A DNA stretch of 64,000 nt from Pelomyxa schiedti. Its lineage: Eukaryota > Protista > Evosea. Position 1 is the first letter of the stretch. Each line of letters begins with the position of its first letter. This document shows positions 7,035 through 28,100 of this stretch, piece by piece. Below the pieces are notes generated by a model. That model saw nothing but the letters and a program-made list of their open reading frames with translations, was not told the DNA's origin and did not search any database. A program made the position numbers and the translations under genes. The DNA lies in the NCBI GenBank assembly GCA_020536535.1, contig JAHLWZ010000346.1:1-64000 (forward strand), written 5' to 3'.

Positions 7035-9423
7035 ATGAGCAACGAACAGCAACAAACACAGGCACAACAACCCCAACAGGCGCAGCAGATGGCGCGACAG
7101 GGTGTTACTGATGTAGCGCGCAAGGAGATGCTAAAGCAACTGCTGTGCGTGTGTGTGGGATGGACTTCGTGATGATGACATTTCTCTTTCCTCCCCTCCT
7201 CCTCCTTCCCGTCGCCCGCACCCCCGCTGTTTTTCCCTCTTTCCTCCTTTTTCTCTATCAACACGCGCACACACAGGCCACCACATCCAGATACGACGGT
7301 GACGGAGGTGCTTAAATTACTCGAAGTTGAAACTGCGAGGGCACACACGAACAACTTGGTGTGTATGTGTTGGCTAGTGTAATAGCCGCGCTTTGTGTGT
7401 GTGTGTGTGTGTGTTAATCCCATCACATTCAATTATTCAGTCTTTCAATCAGGATCACCCAACATTACATCGCACGCATTGTCGCTCCCCAAATAACCTT
7501 GGCGGAGTGTAAGTTTGAGAATCTAACACAACCTTCTTTTGATTGAGTGCAGGCGGCGTATCGGATTGCAATCTCGAATTCTCTCGAGGAGGCGTTGAGG
7601 AATCCAAACCACCAGAAGAATGCCGCTCTGAGTCTTCACACGCAACACTTTGAGCGCCAGATCGGCAACCTGCGGCAGTCAGCTCCTCAGAATACTGTGC
7701 TGCCGCCTCAGCAACTATTGACACAAAGGCCACAACCACTCTTACAAGGCAATCAACAACTTCAAGCGCCACAACAAATGCCACAAGCGTCATCACAGCA
7801 ACCACAACAAATGCAACAATTTACTGCAAACTTCATGCCAAAAATGCCTGCCAAGCCACAGGTTCTTCAGCAGCACGGAATGCCACAAGGTCCTCAGGTT
7901 CAACAGTCCATTTCACTTCAACCACAGATAGTATACATACAACCCCCCCAACAGCAGCAGCAATCATTAACTTCAAATGCCCCTGTTGGGAATATCAACA
8001 TCAACAACCCACAGTTAAACTCTCAGGCAAAATTTGTGGATTTAACCCCAGACGAATTTCCCAATAACCAACGAATTCCCCCGCAGCAAACACAACAACT
8101 GCAAGCCCAGTTACAGCAAGTCCCACAACAGCTGCAAGCATCTCAGTATCAGACAGCATTATCAGCACAACACCCGACAAGACAGTCGCCGGCACCCTCC
8201 CAAGTTGCACCACAATCCGCTCAAATGAGACCACAGAATATGGCACTTCCACAGCAGGCCCAACTTTTACAGTTGCAGCAGCAGCAGTTGCGGCACTATC
8301 AACAAATCCAATTGCAACAGCAACACATGCAGCCGCAACAACACCTGACCCAGCAGCAGGCACAGAATCAGCTGGGCGCCAATGCACGGTACGGCACACA
8401 GCCGATTTCTATTCCTCCCAACTCCACTCAACTTCAAGCCAGTGGTACCACACCTCCAATGTACATGCAACAGCAGCAAACAGCCCTCCCTCAGCAACCT
8501 CAGCTGCAACCACCTCAAGAAATACCATCTCAGGCCTTCCCACCGCAAATGTCAGTCAATGCACAACTTGCTCTTCAAACACAAACGCAATCTCATCAAT
8601 TGGGCAAATTAATGCCACAATTTCCTCCACAAACTCAACTTCCACTGGTGCAAACAAACACACCGCAAAAGGTGCCCCTAATTCCAGGACAATCACAGCA
8701 ACCCCAGAGAGTGTATGCTTACCCGTACCCGCCCTCACAAGGCGTGCCAAATATGCCCCAATTTCATCAACAGGCACAATTTACACACCAGCCGCAGACC
8801 TCAACCCAGTTGCAACAAGTGGGAGTCACTCACGTGATACGAAACACACCACTCGAAGCACCACCTGCAGCAACCCCCAATACCGCCACCATTGGGAACC
8901 TGTCAGGAATATTCGCCAGTCAGACAGGGCCCTCCGGCCCCCATGCGGCTGTCAAGAATTCTCCGGACTTCATGAGCACATCAATGGCGGACTCAGGGCC
9001 AGTAATGGTAACATCAACCGTGACAACGGCACCACCACCGCCAACACAACAGGCTCTTGTCATGATGTCACAAAACACGTCACTCCAACAAGCACCGGCA
9101 CCTATGAACTTCGATTCTCCCGAACTCACCAGTGCCAGTGGACCCGTATCTCGCCTTTCCGAACTCCTCACATCCTCTCAAGATGGTATTACTCCATTAT
9201 TCCCTGGTGATAAACTAACTTTGCAAATGTTACAGAGAAGCAAGAAGCGCAGAAGCTGGAATCGTTTACCCAGAAACTCGAGGTGATCACCCAAACATTT
9301 ACCCCGAGCTACCAAGAATACAAATACGGATGCTCTAAGTGCCTTCAAGAATTCGAAAAGCACTTCGCGCTCGCCAAGACCGCAAGCACAACGCACGACC
9401 CAGCCTCGATGCCCGTGGACTGA
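7035..9423 (+). CDS. Q/P-rich low-complexity protein (possible transcriptional co-regulator)
   Basis: ATG 7035 (MSNEQQQ), short 5' exons, and a 579-aa Q/P-rich ORF (7547-9286). A spliced last exon EKQEAQKLESF...MPVD* ends at 9423. Function is inferred from composition only. Confidence 0.7.
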
Positions 9424-9538
9424 TAGAAGGCACTTAGAGCAATGAGGAATCTGCTATCTGTAAAGTAAAAGCAAAGATACATGCTTTCTTGTAACTTGTT
9501 TACACCGGTCGGCAAAAACCTAAACTCTTTTGTTGGTG

Positions 9539-12320
9539 ATGCGGCATACCACAGGGCCGACGACTAGCGCGGCGACGGGCGCCGCGACGGGGACCGCGAC
9601 GGCGGCGGCGACAACTACCGTGGGAGCGCACGGGGGGGCGACGGCGACCAAGACGAGCAAGTTGGTGGTGGTGTACTCGTACGGCGGCACGACGCGCGCG
9701 GTCGGCCGCAAGATCGCGGCGATGATATGCGCGGATCTGCTGGAGATCCTCGACAGCGCCGCTGTCGGCGCCGAGGGGAAGAAGCCCAAGAAGGACAAGA
9801 CCGGCAAGAAAAAGCACGGCGGCAAGAAGGACAAAGGAGGAGGAGGAGGAGGATTCGACCCCAACTTGTCCGCGGCTACGCCCGCCCGCTCGGCCACAGC
9901 CCCGCCGACGACGACGACGACTACGACGGCGACGGCGACGACGGCCGCGACCGCCGCCGCCCCGCCCAACTTGGAGGCGCAGCACCAGGGCGGCGGCGTC
10001 TTGCACGCGAGCGCGGACGACGAGGGGGCGAGGGAGTCGGGGATTGGCAAGATCCAGTACATCAAAATGTGCTACAGAGCCAAGTTCAAGGTCACTACGG
10101 TGCCCGTTGCGGAGCGCATTACGCCGTGCCAGGACCCACACGAGGCCCACCACACAGGCACACCGAGTGCCGCCCAGCCGGCGGCGACGACGCCCGCCAC
10201 GACGGCCACCACGGCCTCGACGGCCAGCACTGGCGCCGCATCTACTGCGGACGCGCATAACGACGCACAAATGGAAATGGATGCTTTGGCGGAGACTACT
10301 GCCTCACTTGGCGGTTGGTCACACCTTGAGTCCTACACGACTGTCTACATAGGCGCTCCAGTATATGTAATGGCGCTCCACCTTTTTTTTTTTTTTTTTT
10401 TTTTTTTTTTCTCAATTTTTCATCATGTTGAAGGCAAATCACCTCCCAGCACCATGCAGATCATGGTTAGTTGGCCACCGCGATAAACTCTTGACAAACG
10501 CTGCGAAGAAGGTTCGTGGCCCTTGGAGGTTTTATTTACCTAAATGGTCCATAGGTGTTTCATTTTTTCACAACCACACGGACTTCTGGTGCCACTGAAC
10601 TCTTTGCTGATATATCAGAGATACTAGGCATTTCTCCTGTGTCTACTCTCTGTGTACTTTCCAAAAATGCTGAGACGTGGAAGCCAAAGAAGATAGACTT
10701 CTTTGTATGCCAAGCACCTACCCATTTCTTCTCTCACAATTTCTTCAGCGCCAAGACCCTGGGGCTGGCCCAACAAACTATCTGTCTGAAGGACGAATTG
10801 AAGAGCTCTATGAGGTACAATACATTGAGCCAGCAACTGTGTTGTTTACTTAAAATGTAAACAGATTCTCCCCACTGTTCTGGGGAAGGGTACATTCAGT
10901 GTGGTCTACAAAGGGGTTCACAAAGCAACAGGCGAATTTGTTGCAGTAAAGAAACTGCAGAAAAACTCCTTAAGACCTGAGACAATGCGACTCCTTCGCA
11001 GGTGTGTAGACACGGCTTGACCTGTCTTCCCATTAATCTCTGATTAGAGAGATGGTCATATTGAGGAAACTCACCCATCCAAATATTGTGCACCTAAGAG
11101 ACGTGTAATACTTTTTTAAAGTTGTGCCATTACCCTCTAAAGATTGGTAGGTTTGAAACAGAGGAAAGTGTATTCATGATTATCGAGCTTGTTACAGGTG
11201 GAGAACTCTGGCAAAGTATTGTGTCACGAGGTTCACTTTCTGAAGAAGAAGCACGTCACGTTCTTCGACAAGTCCTTGAAGCTGTGGATTACATGCATAG
11301 CAATGGCATCATTCATAGGGTAAACTCTCACTTGTTGGCATTTTCAAGATACAAACTTATTTTCCACAGGACTTGAAAGTATTGCTTACTCTATTCTCAC
11401 TTTCTTTAACGTAATATCAGCCTGAAAACTTGCTCTGTGTTGACTCTACAGTATTTCTCATTTTCTTATCTGTTACTAGAAGACTAATAACACTGCAGGG
11501 TCTGAATGTGAAAATTACTGATTTTGGTCTTGGTAAGTGAACGTCACTCTTTCAAATCTTGACTACTAGCTCAGCAACTGATTCCGTTATGGAGCCGTCA
11601 GTTGTAACACCCTGTGGAACTCCTTCATATGTTGCACCTGAGGTTTTCCTTACCATTACACGATGGACTTAGCATTAACCCTTTTGAAGGTATTCCAAGG
11701 AGGAGAATATGACAACAAGTGTGACGTGTGGTATGAATCAAACACAAAACAACCAACGATGATGAGTACCTTTGTTTACATTACTGAAGGTCGACGGGAG
11801 TATTGTTGTACGTGATGCTCAGTGGTTATATGCCTTTTGATGCGTATGGACAAGTGGTTCCAAACACTGATTAAGGAACATATAGGGATTCTCTGGATGA
11901 AACTCTACGGCGCATCCTTTCGGGGAAGCTTTACTTCCCTGCCAATCTGTTTGGTAATGTGTCTGCCGGTGCCAAAAGCCTCATACAAATGATGTTGACA
12001 GTATCACCCGATCAAAGACCAACTGCAGGTTTGGTCTTCTTTCTGGCACCTCTTTATTTGAAGCTTAGCTGACTTTAGCTGATTGTCTGGCGCACCCTTG
12101 GCTATCCCAAGTTGCTTCCACAGAACCGTTATATACGAAAGCGGCTTTTATGGACAAACAAAATTCATTCTACAAGTACCTCATGGTACCTTCCCCTTGC
12201 AGAATCCCTCAGTGCAACTGACTCATTTTCCCCATTAGCTTGAAGGAAGCATGGAAAAAGTTGATTGAGCACCTCCTCATAAATCCTGACCCCAAACAAC
12301 ACCTCCACATTCCCATTTGA
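9539..12320 (+). CDS. Flavodoxin-like domain fused to CaMK-type Ser/Thr protein kinase
   Basis: Flavodoxin motifs KLVVVYSYGGTTRAVGRKIAAMICADLLEI, YTTVYIGAPVY|ANHLPAPCRSWL and VFHFFTTTRTSG. In-frame splicing (10705-10748, 10815-10864) leads into IEELYE|ILPTVLGKGTFSVV, VAVK, HR|DLK|PEN, DFG, GTPSYVAPE and HPW. Stop at about 12318-12320. Confidence 0.85.
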
Positions 12321-12467
12321 TCGCCCGCCTATGGTTCCTCAATAGAACATCGACAAATTCCAGCCCCGCCCCTGTCCCAGGGTCTCAATTGGAGCCCAAG
12401 ATGAAAAAAAAAAAAAAAAACATCAAAAAATCAAAACACAATTAGAAAGCCCAAAGACGAAATCGAA

Positions 12468-15400
12468 ATGAACAAGCCAGCACGTAGTAGCAGCGCCGAC
12501 ATCAATGCACGGCATCAGCAACAACCGAAAAACAACCAACACAAACGACAACAGCAACAGCAGCAGCAACAAAATCGCCAACAACAACAGCAACAGCAAC
12601 AACAACGTGAGCAGATCGCATCCCCAGCGCCGGCAAAGAAGCACAAGGCGCCGGGGCCCGCCCCAGCGACAAGCGCGACGAGGGGCGCGGGGGCGGCTGC
12701 TACTGCGGCTACGACGGCACCAAGCGTAGCGGCTGCTACGACGACGACGACGACTACTACTACGACGACGACGACTACGGCGCCGGCGGCTGTACCCAGC
12801 TCGAGCTCGGGCAGCGCGGCTGCGATGGGGCGAGGCGGGGGCGGAGGGGGAGGGAGCGGCGGAGCGACGGCCAGCGGGGCGACGGGCAGGGCACCGAGCG
12901 CGAGTGCCAGCGCGAGCGCGACGGCGACTCCAGGGACAAGCGCGAGCAGCGGCAACGGGGGTGGTGGTGGTGGTGGAAGAGGAGGAGGAGGAGGCGGCAA
13001 TAACGTGCCTGTGGGAAACAAGGCGGGAGCTCAGGGCGGGGTAGGAAGAGGGGGCGGCGTGAGGCCCCCCGGTCGGGCAAGGGGAGTTCCACCTACATGC
13101 AACTGCAGTGAATGTGGTGTGTGACATTTATCACCCTTTTTCTTTTTCCTTTTCCTTCCCCCCCCCCCCCCTTTTCTTCCCCTCAGTGTTGACCTTTATT
13201 CTAATCCCTGCCGTTTCTTTCACACACTATCTTTTTCGTTTGGTTTAGTTGCAGCAAGTAGAGAATATGACAGAAGCTTGATAGCTATTGACAAACTCGA
13301 TCGAAACGGCTTCACTTCTACTGTGCCACCTTCAGGAAGAGCAAATAACAGAAGCAGGAGTAGTAGCCAGAGTAGAATTACTATTGGCGTTAGTGTGGAG
13401 GGGGACAGCGACTATTTAAGTGGAAGCAATAGTTGTGAGACTGCTGAGGACACAGATGCATATGACGACTCCAATGAGAGCGAGGGTTGTCCTGCTTCTG
13501 AGACTACATGCCGCGAATTTACACGAGTGTGGTCAGCGTTACAAGGTTTCCTGGTCAACTTACACTATTTTGGACTTACACGGGGTGAAGAAATGCTTAA
13601 GAACGGAGGAGAAGACTTTGCACGGCAATTTTTGAACAGGCACAAGGAAGCTCCTCAAACTTGTGTATGTCTATGTTAAACCTCTCAATATGTCTGTTGA
13701 TGACCTTTTTTTGTATTGGATGTATCGTTTTGCGTTCGTCTAATGAACAGGGTAATTATCAATAATGTTAACATTGGTTATGGCAGCAAAACGGTTGCAT
13801 GTGCCCCACACGAGCCCAGTGGCAAATTCAGTGTTCTGCTGCCGTTCCAACACAGTACCCTCAGTACCGTAAGTGTGAACGGACACAATACAGTGAGTGC
13901 AAAGCCAATAACAGTAACTGCGGAGGAACGACTTCCACCGCTAGGACATCTGGTGGTGGGGGTGGTAGTGAATCAAATGCTTCTGTGGACATGTCATCTG
14001 GTTTCATTGTCGTCCCTGGAAGCATTGAAGAGGCAAAAAAACTATCAAGAGAGAAAAAATTTGCTCTCAAAGTACCAGCTTGTTGTGGCCCACTTCCCTC
14101 ACATGCATCACCTGTAACCAACAAACCTTCATCAACTCCTATTCTGTCTCGCACCATAACAAAAGCTTGCACTTCCGAGATGAGACCCCAAGCCCATTCT
14201 CCTGTGGTCATTCCAGATGACGAAGGATACTGGTTGGAACTACAAAATCTTGTTGGCAGTATTTTCAAAGACCCAACGTGCCCTACCACAAGGGAACAAC
14301 TGGAAAGAGGGTACCAACGTTGTCAAAATTCTAAACAAACCTCACATGTCTCTCGTTCTTCACAGGCTGATTTGCACATGTAAACTATGTAACATCAATC
14401 CTGTATCTCTATTTTTGAAATTGGAGAACAAAGCAGTTTCCTGGATGCAACATCTAAGATCGCACCTGGTTCAATTTATTTCATCCTCAGCCCCGCTCAT
14501 GAGCCAATGTTAGCTTCCATATCTCTTTCATACACATTTAACATGATAAAAAGCCAACGCAACTGACTTTGTCACCCTTGTTGGGGCCTCATTTGAGAGC
14601 ATTACAAAAGCGAGCCAAGTACTGGATCCTGTTCTGGAGCCCCTTTATACACATTTTCTAATTCAGTTCAACATCAATTTTGGCGATGTGATAAAGGTAC
14701 AAAACCGTTCTATCTTATCAACTTAAACGAAATAGGGTTTGTTCCATCATATCGTTTTTGATGATGCTATCGTGCAAACTGTATTACCTCAAGTAAAATC
14801 CCTTCTAGGGGATGGTAGCACTACAAAACAGTCCACAAGTTCTCCTGCACCAGCCTCAGATACTCCGCATATTCCTGTGCAAAACCCAAAGGAATCCTCA
14901 CACCAACCAGTACCTACAACTTCTTCAGTACCCACATTGCCCGTAGAGTGCAACCGCTATTGTCACATATTTGATGGCATCGTCAGTAGTGCCCTTAAGT
15001 GCGCTATTTTATTTTATTTTATTTTTTTTTTTTTTTTAAGAATTACCTATTATTTTAATTTTTTTACTTAGGTGGACATCTAACAAAGAGGTGCTACAGC
15101 GGTATCTTGCCCAGCATCAAGTACACCACATATATTATTGAAAATTTGCAATCAATACTAACTCAACCTCTATTAGCACACAGTACATAAAACTGTTCCA
15201 TCTCCGCCGTCATGTAAGCATTTACGGCAACATCATCAACAAATTCCAGCTGAACTTCCTCACTCTCACAACCACTCTATTATCCATACACATCATCAAC
15301 CCTCTTCCCCAAAGCAAGGGCAGCAGTCACAAGCACAGCAGTTGCAAGTGCAACAATCGCAATGTAGTACATTACCACAAGAAACAGCACAGCAGAGTAA

Positions 15401-25145: not shown

Positions 25146-28100
25146 CTATTGCCAGATGAGAAGGGTGGTGGAGCCTTCACCAACAGAGGCCCATATTGTA
25201 ACTGGGTTGGTGCAAACCAGTCCAGCTGTTTCGGCCACCACAAAAGTGTGCAGTGGTCTGTTTCTGTGTGAATTGGGGTTTGTTGGAGTTGGCGTTGGTG
25301 TTTGTGTTGTTTGTGGTGATTGCAGTTGGTTCGTTGTGGTTGGTGCAGTAGAAGACAAATCCGGATGTGTAAGAACGGTTTCCGTGTTAGGTGGTTGTAC
25401 TGCCGGCCTGTTTGGGGTGAGAACTTGCAAGCACTTGGGATCCTTCCTGTTCCACACAAGGAGTTTTCCATCCTGCTGTAGTGCTATTACAAAGTCAGAC
25501 AGTGTGCGCACTGCCACAATGGAGTTGGTTTGTTGGGCTGGACCGGTTTTAATAGAACCCACAGAGCCTTGCGTCGTTGTACCACTGCTAATCACCGCTG
25601 TCGGGGTGTGGGGTTCTCCCAGCCTTTCAAAGCATTGAACAGCCACACCAGTGTTGATATCCAGCGAAATGAGAGAAGAGCCCTGAGCAACTAGAATAAA
25701 AGATTCTGACCACACATTGGCCATGCTAGTGACAGATTCACTTTGCAGGCGAATGACCCGTACCAGAGTGAGGTTATGTGCATCAAACACGATTATAAGG
25801 CCCGAACTAGTGCCTATCCACAATTCATTACAGTGTTGGGTTGCGCACGTAGCGATTCCATCAATCTGTGTTTTGATAGTGTCCTTTGAAGCGGAATCAC
25901 CAGACAGGAGAACAGCATGTGAGGTTGAAGATGTTACTGAAACCACAAGGGCCTTGGCATCTGTTGAGTTTTCAATGTGTACTGGCATTATGATTTGTAT
26001 GCGTGAAGATACCTTCTTTTTTTTTTCTGTAAGTTTACAAATAGATGAAATTAGGACACACAGTTCCGAGGAAACTGCAATCCCTCTTTGAAATTGTGTG
26101 TGAAAGGATATCAACGTCGTACAACTCGGAATTTTCAGACGAGCACAGGACAGAATGGCCCACCATCGTCATGCAGAAAATTGGTGTTTTATGTATAGTC
26201 ACAGAACAAGAGAAATCACTTGTATCTCGATAGATCAATATTTCTCCAGTACTGAGACCAACCCATATTTCACCTGTTCCGACTGATGCTATGCTACAAA
26301 CCTTTTTTTTGTGTTTAGCTGGAAGGAAGTACTTGAGGAAAATTTTTCACCATTTGTTCAACTGGTAACGTAGAGGAACTGAGACCAGAAAGAATGTCCA
26401 CTGAGATCTTTCTTTGAGTGCCTATTGGTTTGTTATTTGATTCATTGAAAATGTTAAGGAGGAAACCTATGAAATGGTGAATTTTAGGTGAACTGGATGT
26501 CCTCGTGATAGTGTTTGGGGAGGAAGATTTCAGCTCTCCATCATCCATTTCAAATGGAAGTGCTTCCTCTGTGGCCAGTGGACTGCTGCCTTGAACAGAC
26601 ATGCTAGACTCTGAAACGGGGGACACTTCTGCACTCGGAGTGGCGTTGCTAGGCATTTGAGGTGACGGTCTTCTCCTAGCGGCTTGCCTTGACATAGAAA
26701 ATAAGAAGGCAATTGAGAAAATGGGAAAACCATGACTTGCTTGGCACAGTGGGTGTTGGGACTGAAGTTCCACTTCTTGTGTAATTTTTCCAAAAGTAAA
26801 ATTGATACTTCTTACTTGTCACGGAGGCTGGAGGATTCTGGATCTGGTGAAACCACATTCAGGTCAGATGGGTCCATGGTTTCAATGTAAAGACAGGCCG
26901 AAACTAGGTGTGTGTAAAAACAAAATCCTTCACCGATGCGCTCTTCCATGTCAGCAAACCTACTTACAAACGTGACAATTAGTTAGGGAGCAACTCTTAA
27001 GATGGTAGGTGACGGTTTGTTTTGGATATGATGTATTTGAAATAACTCGTGAGAGATTGGCTTGAATGACAATATAGATAAAGAGCGGTAAAAAGTCGTC
27101 AGCACCAGCTGAACTTCCAGAGGTCTGCAAGGCATCTATTTGAGTGACAGTAATGCCAAGTGAGATGCTCATCGCTTAAGAAAGTAGGAAATGACAGTAC
27201 ATATAACAACTTTGCATGCTTTTAAAATACATGCTATTTTCTCGTAAGGTGTATAAACCTTGTCCATAGCTTCCAGCTCTGGAAGTGATTGAGTGCATAT
27301 CATTTTTAAGGGAGATACCTTCAATAGACGAGCGAATCAAGCTTGCATCTATTGGAATTTTAATTTCCATTGTGCTAAGAGTCACAACTGGCTTCAGTCT
27401 TGCAACTTGTTGTTGGAATTTGTTGTCCTTTTCTTGAAAAGCTCTTTTGAAAAAAATACTTGGTAAAGTGAGGAGACAGCCGATTCAAATGGAGGTGAAA
27501 ACCAGTTATATAAGTGGCCAAAGACATATCGCTTCATGCTTGCCTTGGCTTTTACAAATTCGTTTGATGGCATAGTGCACCAGGGAGGCTTAATTTTCAT
27601 CGTATATTCAGCAGATGCCAAGAAGTCATTGAGTATTTTAGATTCATCATCCAACGGAAGCCTTTTAGTGCGTTTCTCAAATGTGCGAATGAACCTTTGT
27701 GTTATCAGAAAAGGTACATTATTTGAAGTGGTACATTTCAACAACAGCTTTTATCTCTTTGCACAACGGTGTTGTTAATATATGTGAAAATGAGTACTCG
27801 GGTAGCTCGTCAGTATTAGTCCAATATATTTCCTAAGTCTGTAAGAAATTGCTGGATTTTAATGAAATGCACCACCTACCTTATTTTTTGAAGGTTTCAC
27901 TTTTGACTTGTCATCTGGAATCTTCCTCTTTTTGGCTTTTGTAGACTTGTCATCCTGCTTTTGATATGATTAAAGATGACACTACCTGCGCATATTACTT
28001 TCTTATGCTTTGATTCTCTATCCCTGGTCTTTCCGTCAGCTCCTTCTTTCAATATTGATGGTATTGGAGGAGGATTTTTTGGAGGGGGAGGTATGATCAT

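Follow-up and report, generated by a model that had tools for sequence, protein, structure and literature searches.

The locus at 9539-12268 of a 64,000-nucleotide stretch of the Pelomyxa schiedti genome (assembly GCA_020536535.1, contig JAHLWZ010000346.1, positions 1 to 64,000 of the forward strand; the window, hereafter) raises two questions: whether a flavodoxin-like domain and a protein kinase of the CaMK group are made there as a single protein, and whether such a domain still holds a flavin through which the kinase may be controlled. Pelomyxa is an anaerobe hosting methanogenic and syntrophic endosymbionts. To our knowledge, oxygen and redox-stress sensing in anaerobic protists is largely unknown, and flavin input to eukaryotic protein kinases is known only via LOV/PAS domains. 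The first question can be answered with near certainty. One spliced mRNA joins a divergent Flavodoxin_4-type domain (amino acids, aa, ~38-352) through a 22-residue linker to a Ser/Thr kinase of the CaMK group whose catalytic motifs are intact. The gene lies on the + strand and is made of 16 exons, which encode 666 aa in the order flavodoxin-like domain, linker, kinase, and of 15 introns, each GT-AG and 42-67 nt long.

The gene model was derived by three-frame reading of positions 9000-13000, and later corrected with RNA contigs mapped onto 9400-12400. These come from the single-cell RNA libraries X1, X2 and X3 and from run X4 (type unrecorded), all belonging to a single study. One X1 contig (record 1) joins the pieces 10113-10366, 10434-10509 and 10553-10648, which correspond to exons 1, 2 and 3; another, record 2 of 1052 nt, has its first piece in exon 3 (10622-10704), then proceeds via the linker into the kinase exons. 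The joint between exons 3 and 4 was found independently in X2, where record 4 links 10634-10704 to 10749-10812, and every kinase intron joint is present in the RNA contigs. A first-pass annotation, made from the sequence alone, had placed phase-0 introns at 10705-10748 and 10815-10864; both are borne out by RNA joints (10704>10749 and 10814>10865, in X1 and X2), and across the domain boundary (10650-10900) an X1 contig passes from exon 3 via the linker to the kinase, the exon 3-exon 4 joint being seen in two libraries. The motifs it listed are also in place: SYGGTT at 9677-9694, IGAPVY closing exon 1 at 10366, PAPCRSWL in exon 2, FFTTTRTSG in exon 3, and GKGTFSVV, VAVK, HRDLKPEN, DFG and APE in the kinase exons. 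The 3' end, set at 12320, had to be moved. According to RNA the donor of the last intron is at 12186, the stop codon is at 12266-12268, and the protein ends with ...FYKYLMLEGSMEKVD, the same C-terminus being found in the GenBank protein KAH3763828.1.

Exon 1 is ~70% G+C and encodes an Ala/Thr/Gly-rich leader, then KLVVVYSYGGTTRAVGRKIAAMICADLLEIL, a long insert, and finally ...LESYTTVYIGAPVY. The HRDLKPEN motif spans three exons, DLK being encoded by the 9-nt microexon GACTTGAAA (11370-11378, +). The microexon is proven by the RNA joint 11320>11421, which carries ACTTGAAA between its two sides in both X1 and X2. No Met is encoded in exon 4 or at the beginning of exon 5, hence a separate start codon for the kinase is lacking.

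The gene corresponds to P. schiedti KAH3763828.1, named "myosin light chain kinase", the sequence of which agrees fully with the RNA-corrected model from Met62 to the C-terminus. Pfam, structure and database comparisons were carried out with this protein and with a paralogue, KAH3759715.1, while the spliced 666-aa model was scored by local HMMER only. A phmmer search with exon 3 against 1.84 billion representatives retrieved two useful proteins, KAH3759715.1 (595 aa, 73% identity) and P0002, a 72-aa fragment; KAH3763828.1 was in turn retrieved by searching with the N-terminal domain of KAH3759715.1. The latter, deposited as "CAMK protein kinase [Pelomyxa schiedti]", has the same architecture and a full N-terminal domain, including ...KLVVVYSHGGTTRLIGRKIAAFICADLLEIL... 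Its gene (locus L121 of the same assembly) has 16 exons, all 15 intron positions and phases identical to those of the window gene, and the microexon is kept (7568-7576 of L121). Both deposited paralogues are named only as kinases, and the precomputed Pfam annotation lists kinase domains alone.

The fragment P0002 is an open reading frame (ORF), called in prokaryote style, of a 76.8-kb metagenome contig in ENA (ERZ21831265; L122 hereafter), found also as Logan contig L123 (ERR12015701). L122 features an open spliced frame which reads MAAAGS...NLVVFYSRTGCTKAIALKIAIQIAADVIEI...TYKTVYIGSPVH, then SNHLAAPCRTWMV...HKAFHFFTTTWSSG...TWKPSSTDFY, followed by a linker, ...LGRGSFSVVYK... and a complete kinase. 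Introns 1, 3 and 4 of the window gene are matched in place by introns of this frame; intron 2 is present in L121 and absent from L122. The L122 locus is 38% G+C and ~50% identical, and only ~58 residues separate beta2 from beta3, hence it represents the same fusion, nearly insert-free, in another organism. Further fusion relatives were not confirmed among 499 pattern matches (scan of JGI metagenomes, alignment of three C-halves), and tblastx revealed no synteny of the window flanks with either L121 or L122. In word-index searches, no relative of the exon-1 frame scored among proteins, low-complexity words having filled the 8000 candidates, and aa 193-276 had no match among proteins called on RNA contigs. 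The fusion is older than the gene duplication in P. schiedti, and is present in at least one other eukaryote.

The differences between the two paralogues, few of them non-synonymous although synonymous sites are close to saturation, indicate that purifying selection acts on both halves of the fusion. The proportions of synonymous (pS) and non-synonymous (pN) differences are 0.955 and 0.165 in aa 38-72 (beta1-beta2), 0.61 and 0.12 in the C-half of the domain, and 0.74 and 0.10 in the kinase. In a conserved block of the insert (aa 166-200) they measure 0.89 and 0.14, and in the low-complexity parts of the insert 0.63-0.73 and about 0.41.

In the kinase half, Pfam identifies the Pkinase domain at residues 318-569 of KAH3763828.1 (3.6e-77). 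The set of kinase motifs is complete (GKGTFSVV, VAVK, the alphaC Glu, HRDLKPEN, DFG, TPCGTPSYVAPE, DVWS, APE, RPTA). The nearest PDB matches of the 56-aa exon 7 by phmmer are CaMKIV (2W4O, 1.3e-13), MELK, CaMKII, CDPK1 and CaMKI; the assignment of the kinase to the CaMK group is based on these matches of one exon, not on a kinome-wide tree. The activation loop, ...TPCGTPSYVAPE, is CaMKI-like, and a short C-terminal ...QNSFYKY resembles the start of the autoinhibitory segment. Unlike CaMKI, CaMKIV, CaMKII, MELK and CDPK, the protein has an acidic tail and an accessory domain which is N-terminal and flavodoxin-like. The tail, of ~36 residues after HPWL, is net acidic and ends with ...QNSFYKYLMLEGSMEKVD at 12268; inspection, the only analysis made of it, revealed neither a basic amphipathic calmodulin-binding helix nor EF hands. 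No PAS/LOV match was reported by Pfam on KAH3759715.1 or KAH3763828.1, and the N-terminal domain is the sole accessory domain of the kinase.

Sequence comparison indicates that the N-terminal domain is homologous to Flavodoxin_4 (PF12682), a family represented in the PDB by Bacteroides (3KLB, 4ICI, 4J8P) and Lactobacillus (3EDO) proteins, though it is highly divergent, eukaryotic domains being only 14-26% identical to bacterial sequences. The match is collinear over beta1, phosphate loop and alpha1, and from beta3 to beta5. By phmmer the best PDB match is 3KLB, in two collinear segments (residues 8-38 and 56-89); exon 2 or exon 3 alone, too short as pieces, had no match at E 10. A custom hidden Markov model (HMM) was built from 43 bacterial domains, taken from genes fetched by the pattern GYPIWWG; 42 were re-scanned, and all 42 match PF12682 (best E 7.5e-61). 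This model detects the whole spliced protein in two collinear pieces at 25.2 bits (E 5.6e-10 at Z=1, that is for one sequence), positions 4-34 aligning to aa 38-72. With the insert deleted, the core reaches 30.3 bits, compared to 8.5 for the top-scoring of 4001 shuffles. The exon-1 frame ranks first among 1911 six-frame segments of the window compared to a Flavodoxin_4 HMM (E 1.2e-5), and hhalign pairs a profile made of the fusions only with the bacterial profile at 96.1% probability (E 3.6e-9). Language-model neighbours, taken as a lead only, point the same way: 55 of the 100 atlas clusters nearest to exon 3 carry PF12682, and the neighbours of the KAH3759715.1 N-terminal domain are flavodoxin clusters.

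The domain is predicted to adopt the five-stranded alpha/beta flavodoxin fold. An AlphaFold2 (AF2) model of residues 1-290 of KAH3759715.1, obtained from an alignment including bacterial rows, has predicted local distance difference test (pLDDT) values of 86-94 in the beta/alpha core, and lower than 50 in the insert. The best Foldseek matches of the model are the FMN (flavin mononucleotide)-bound 3EDO (TM by target 0.67-0.69), then 4ICI and 3KLB; both 3EDO and 3KLB are FMN complexes, the FMN of 3KLB being bound non-covalently (PMC11334425). By VIA-align, 4ICI (Z 13.5), 4J8P (13.2) and 3KLB (13.2) superimpose over 135-138 residues with a root-mean-square deviation of 2.7-3.2 A, and the classical Clostridium flavodoxin follows (Z 12.3-12.5). 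The model is confident only when bacterial rows are in the alignment; it collapses once they are removed, and the fold evidence is hence not independent of the sequence alignment. The first-pass description of a complete prokaryote-type flavodoxin goes too far: an insert of ~170 aa takes the place of the lid loop, and scores stay under the Pfam gathering cut-offs. A receiver (CheY) domain was also considered for the N-terminal region and rejected, fold matches to receivers being far weaker than those to flavoproteins. The case carries a warning for annotation, as a domain into which 170 low-complexity residues are inserted, and whose coding sequence is split by three tiny introns, drops under every profile threshold.

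The putative cofactor site was analyzed by taking the bacterial columns conserved in at least 75% of the sequences. Residues kept in 3/3 fusions where aligned are, in KAH3759715.1 numbering, S24, G27, T29, G197, P199, K227, F232, T234, S238, G239 and W269. They correspond to the Ser, Gly and Thr of the phosphate loop, a Gly-x-Pro after beta3, the Lys-x-x-x-x-Phe-x-Thr-x-x-x-Ser-Gly around beta4, and a C-terminal Trp. Invariant between Pelomyxa and L122 are S..G.T, HFFTTTxxSG, and the NHLxAPCR found after beta3. Such invariance of the cofactor loops between the two organisms is as expected if flavin is still bound.

The insert measures ~170 aa (aa 73-240) in the window gene, is shorter in KAH3759715.1, and is nearly absent in L122. 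A polybasic cluster, KKPKKDKTGKKKHGGKKDK (9779-9835), is found in it, with a counterpart, EKKPKKEKSGKKK, in KAH3759715.1 and none in L122; its appearance suggests a patch for nuclear localisation or membrane binding. The paralogue shares 80% identity over the non-repetitive block ESGIGKIQYIKMCYRAKFKVTTVPVAERITP (10034-10138), of which a faint trace (GSFLRLCSAAVEKADNTPIRASP) can be made out in L122; the block is modelled, at low confidence, as a strand.

On these grounds we hold, with slightly less than even confidence in the statement as a whole, fusion included, that the N-terminal domain still binds a flavin, most likely FMN, and regulates the kinase in a flavin-dependent manner. The S..G.T loop and the F-x-T-x-x-x-S-G loop after beta4 would hold the phosphate and ribityl parts of the flavin, and a Tyr or His would replace, over the isoalloxazine ring, the first Trp of the family. 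The protein has no other regulatory element, which makes the domain the likely input of the kinase. A change in the redox state of the flavin, driven by oxygen or by a low-potential electron pool, or a change in occupancy, would affect the loops that follow beta3 and beta4; the change may then pass via the short linker to the N-lobe of the kinase and switch its activity. Control by the flavin domain would replace the missing calmodulin-binding tail, and a role in localisation or partner binding may come from the conserved insert block and the polybasic cluster. The wider claim is tentative, namely that the protein would be the first in which a flavin sensor of the flavodoxin fold, born from a bacterial Flavodoxin_4 gene, is linked directly to a eukaryotic protein kinase, reporting oxygen or the low-potential electron pool by switching the kinase, and would represent a class of redox-to-phosphorylation input separate from LOV/PAS.

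Several findings weigh against flavin-dependent control. No Pfam comparison reached its gathering cut-off: Flavodoxin_4 scores 18.8 bits on exon 1 (E 1.2e-3; positions 2-32, aa 38-72) and 16.3 on KAH3759715.1, the cut-off being 24, and Flavodoxin_5 scores 16.4 on the C-half (E 0.011; cut-off 27). With the fusion sequences alone in the alignment, AF2 yields an uninformative model (pLDDT 36.5). Compared to the S/T-x-S/T-G-x-T consensus, the phosphate loop reads S-Y-G-G-T-T in the window gene and S-H-G-G-T-T in KAH3759715.1, the third position being Gly, not Ser or Thr, in both Pelomyxa paralogues. The Trp-Trp which follows beta3 in the family (G-Y-P-I-W-W-G) is changed to Tyr-Ala in Pelomyxa (G-A-P-V-Y-A-N) and to His-Ser in L122 (G-S-P-V-H-S-N), though the invariance of the pair in bacteria is inflated, since the bacterial sample was chosen by the motif itself. 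The family lid segment PY..DL..SR..E is lost and has the insert in its place (~170 aa, ~58 aa in L122). The coupling of domain and kinase outlined above is pure conjecture, and the RNA and database records at the start of the protein, discussed below, count on the same side.

Much of this would suit a domain which has kept the fold and lost the flavin. Such a domain would serve as a cofactor-free module for regulation, dimerisation or docking, comparable to a degenerate receiver domain, with the insert block and the polybasic cluster as its functional surface. The changed Trp pair, the missing lid, the SxGGTT loop of both paralogues, scores under every Pfam threshold and the low identity to bacterial proteins all agree with it, and the insert block is the most conserved novelty of the protein (pN 0.14). 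However, the residues invariant between Pelomyxa and L122 are precisely those of the cofactor-site loops (S..G.T, HFFTTTxxSG, NHLxAPCR), which a scaffold kept for its fold only would not need, and in L122, where the insert is almost lacking, the phosphate loop is fully canonical (S-R-T-G-C-T). Loss of the flavin is a serious possibility, though short of probable.

The flavodoxin domain may otherwise be a working electron carrier or oxidoreductase, which docks on redox enzymes such as PFO or hydrogenase and recruits the kinase to phosphorylate them, no flavin switch being involved. Flavodoxin_4 proteins are electron-transfer proteins, and some members of the family with a beta1-alpha1 insertion are covalently flavinylated extracytosolic electron carriers (PMC11334425). 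In many of the bacterial Flavodoxin_4 genes (L001, L005, L010, L012 and others) the domain is preceded by a signal peptide of the lipoprotein type and by a low-complexity linker, in agreement with an extracytosolic electron-transfer role (PMC11334425). In anaerobic protists flavodoxin domains are fused to hydrogenases (PMC5608401), and the host of the present fusion is anaerobic (PMC8887013). Yet no partner is known, neither a redox-enzyme neighbour nor synteny was found, and present evidence does not separate tethering from sensing. We regard a tethering role as improbable.

Slightly less probable still is a translation start at Met62 or later, which would leave the phosphate loop untranslated and the domain crippled in this paralogue, even if intact in the other. 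KAH3763828.1 begins at the internal Met62 (9722; MICADLL), and by omitting 9539-9721 loses beta1 together with the phosphate loop. In three libraries the RNA depth over 9501-10106 is zero; that the mRNA of this paralogue includes the phosphate loop is hence supported by conservation, not by reads. An X2 cDNA contig starts at 10200 behind GAGTACATGGG, which we take to be a Smart-seq template-switch oligo tail. An X1 contig, however, reaches 10113, upstream of this tail. Position 10200 is hence not where the transcript starts but a cDNA end internal to it, in repetitive G+C-rich sequence. From the ATG at 9539 the frame is open, the region is ~70% G+C and repetitive, a setting in which short-read contigs break, and the RNA of the upstream gene ends near 9451. 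The beta1 and phosphate loop region missing from the GenBank protein is conserved in the paralogue and in L122, and residues 38-61 are near-identical to the paralogue, synonymous changes being saturated and non-synonymous ones few. Residues 38-72 are thus coding and constrained, which argues for Met1 (9539) over Met62.

That two adjacent genes or an assembly chimera have been misread as one gene is hardly credible, as the sharp change in G+C at ~10370 and the breaks of short-read DNA contigs at 10078 and at a T run are countered by spliced RNA which, in separate libraries, connects 10113-10366 with exons 2 and 3, and exon 3 with the kinase, by the same 16-exon structure on another contig, and by the same fusion in another organism.

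Flavin-dependent control, if correct, has partial parallels. In concept the protein resembles phototropins and other LOV-kinases, in which an FMN-binding input domain (predicted, in the present case) is N-terminal to a eukaryotic kinase in one polypeptide. LOV domains have a PAS fold and form a light-driven Cys-FMN adduct (at the Cys of GXNCRFLQ), and the J-alpha helix couples them to an AGC kinase. The Pelomyxa protein differs in featuring a flavodoxin fold and a CaMK-group kinase, no light chemistry is implied, and the host is a sediment anaerobe. KefF-KefC, WrbA and NQO1 are also flavodoxin-like flavoproteins regulating a non-redox effector, and their structures are among the weaker fold matches of the domain; unlike the fusion, they are separate subunits of the FMN_red and Flavodoxin_2 groups, and in no case is a protein kinase regulated through fusion to one of them. 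The sampled bacterial Flavodoxin_4 proteins are stand-alone, and often lipoproteins. The fusion, in contrast, is eukaryotic, kinase-linked and, as no signal peptide was seen, by default cytosolic.

Sensor-type domains fused to Ser/Thr kinases are already known; a flavodoxin input fold is unreported for eukaryotic protein kinases. The first-pass annotation knew of no characterised example, and a literature search of 8.4 million papers and preprints likewise found no description of a flavodoxin-kinase fusion; domain-architecture databases were not queried, and unnoticed examples may exist. Flavodoxin is not mentioned in the P. schiedti genome paper, and the fusion is missed by public annotation. 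It offers a concrete candidate for redox or oxygen sensing, which can be tested at the bench. Should FMN be bound, a new class of sensor would enter kinase signalling, and a compact redox-switch module would be available for engineering; should it not, the protein would plainly exemplify the recruitment of a cofactor domain as a regulatory fold devoid of its cofactor. Features of the gene are listed in Table 1.

Table 1. Features of the flavodoxin-kinase gene, in window coordinates.
Feature	Position	Strand	Description
Exon 1	9539..10366	+	276 aa; Ala/Thr/Gly-rich leader, beta1/phosphate loop/alpha1/beta2, long insert, beta3; X1 RNA covers 10113-10366
aa 38-72	9650..9754	+	KTSKLVVVYSYGGTTRAVGRKIAAMICADLLEILD; putative beta1, phosphate-binding loop (SYGGTT 9677-9694), alpha1, beta2; Pfam, PDB and local HMM matches
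Insert, aa 73-240	9755..10258	+	~70% G+C; polybasic cluster and Thr/Ala/Gly low-complexity runs around conserved block
aa 241-276	10259..10366	+	putative end of lid region and beta3 (YTTVYIGAPVY); 3KLB residues 56-89, local HMM positions 50 onward, hhalign
Intron 1	10367..10433	+	67 nt, GT..AG, phase 0; X1 record 1 stops at 10366, resumes at 10434
Exon 2	10434..10511	+	26 aa, ANHLPAPCRSWLVGHRDKLLTNAAKK; putative loop after beta3 and alpha3
Intron 2	10512..10554	+	43 nt, phase 0; X1 RNA joint
Exon 3	10555..10704	+	50 aa, VFHFFTTTRTSGATELFADISEILGISPVSTLCVLSKNAETWKPKKIDFF; putative beta4, FxTxxxSG loop, alpha4, beta5, conserved Trp
Intron 3	10705..10748	+	44 nt, phase 0, flavodoxin/linker boundary; joint 10704>10749 in X1 (depth 15.8) and X2 (4.05)
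Exon 4, linker	10749..10814	+	22 aa, RQDPGAGPTNYLSEGRIEELYE; no Met
Kinase exons 5-15	10865..12185	+	end of exon 15 (12185) set by RNA
Last exon	12239..12268	+	LEGSMEKVD and TGA (12266-12268); joint 12185>12239 in X1 and X3

Intron 1 contains a T28 homopolymer (10383-10410), at which short-read DNA and RNA contigs break, and across which G+C falls from ~70% to ~40%. A second match to the flavodoxin HMM in the window (27397-27750, - strand, E 0.025) was discarded as not flavodoxin, the segment being DUF5601-like (22.7 bits, cut-off 23). Upstream, a + strand gene (7547-9423, TGA at 9421-9423) encodes a very Gln-rich product; its RNA reaches at least 9451, less than 90 nt from the ATG at 9539. 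Downstream, an ORF at 12468-13124 features Gln/Thr/Ala/Gly low-complexity runs in G+C-rich DNA, resembling the exon 1 insert. Such G+C-rich repeats in coding sequence are met elsewhere in the window too, G+C peaking at ~37-38, 40-41, 55-56 and 58-59 kb.

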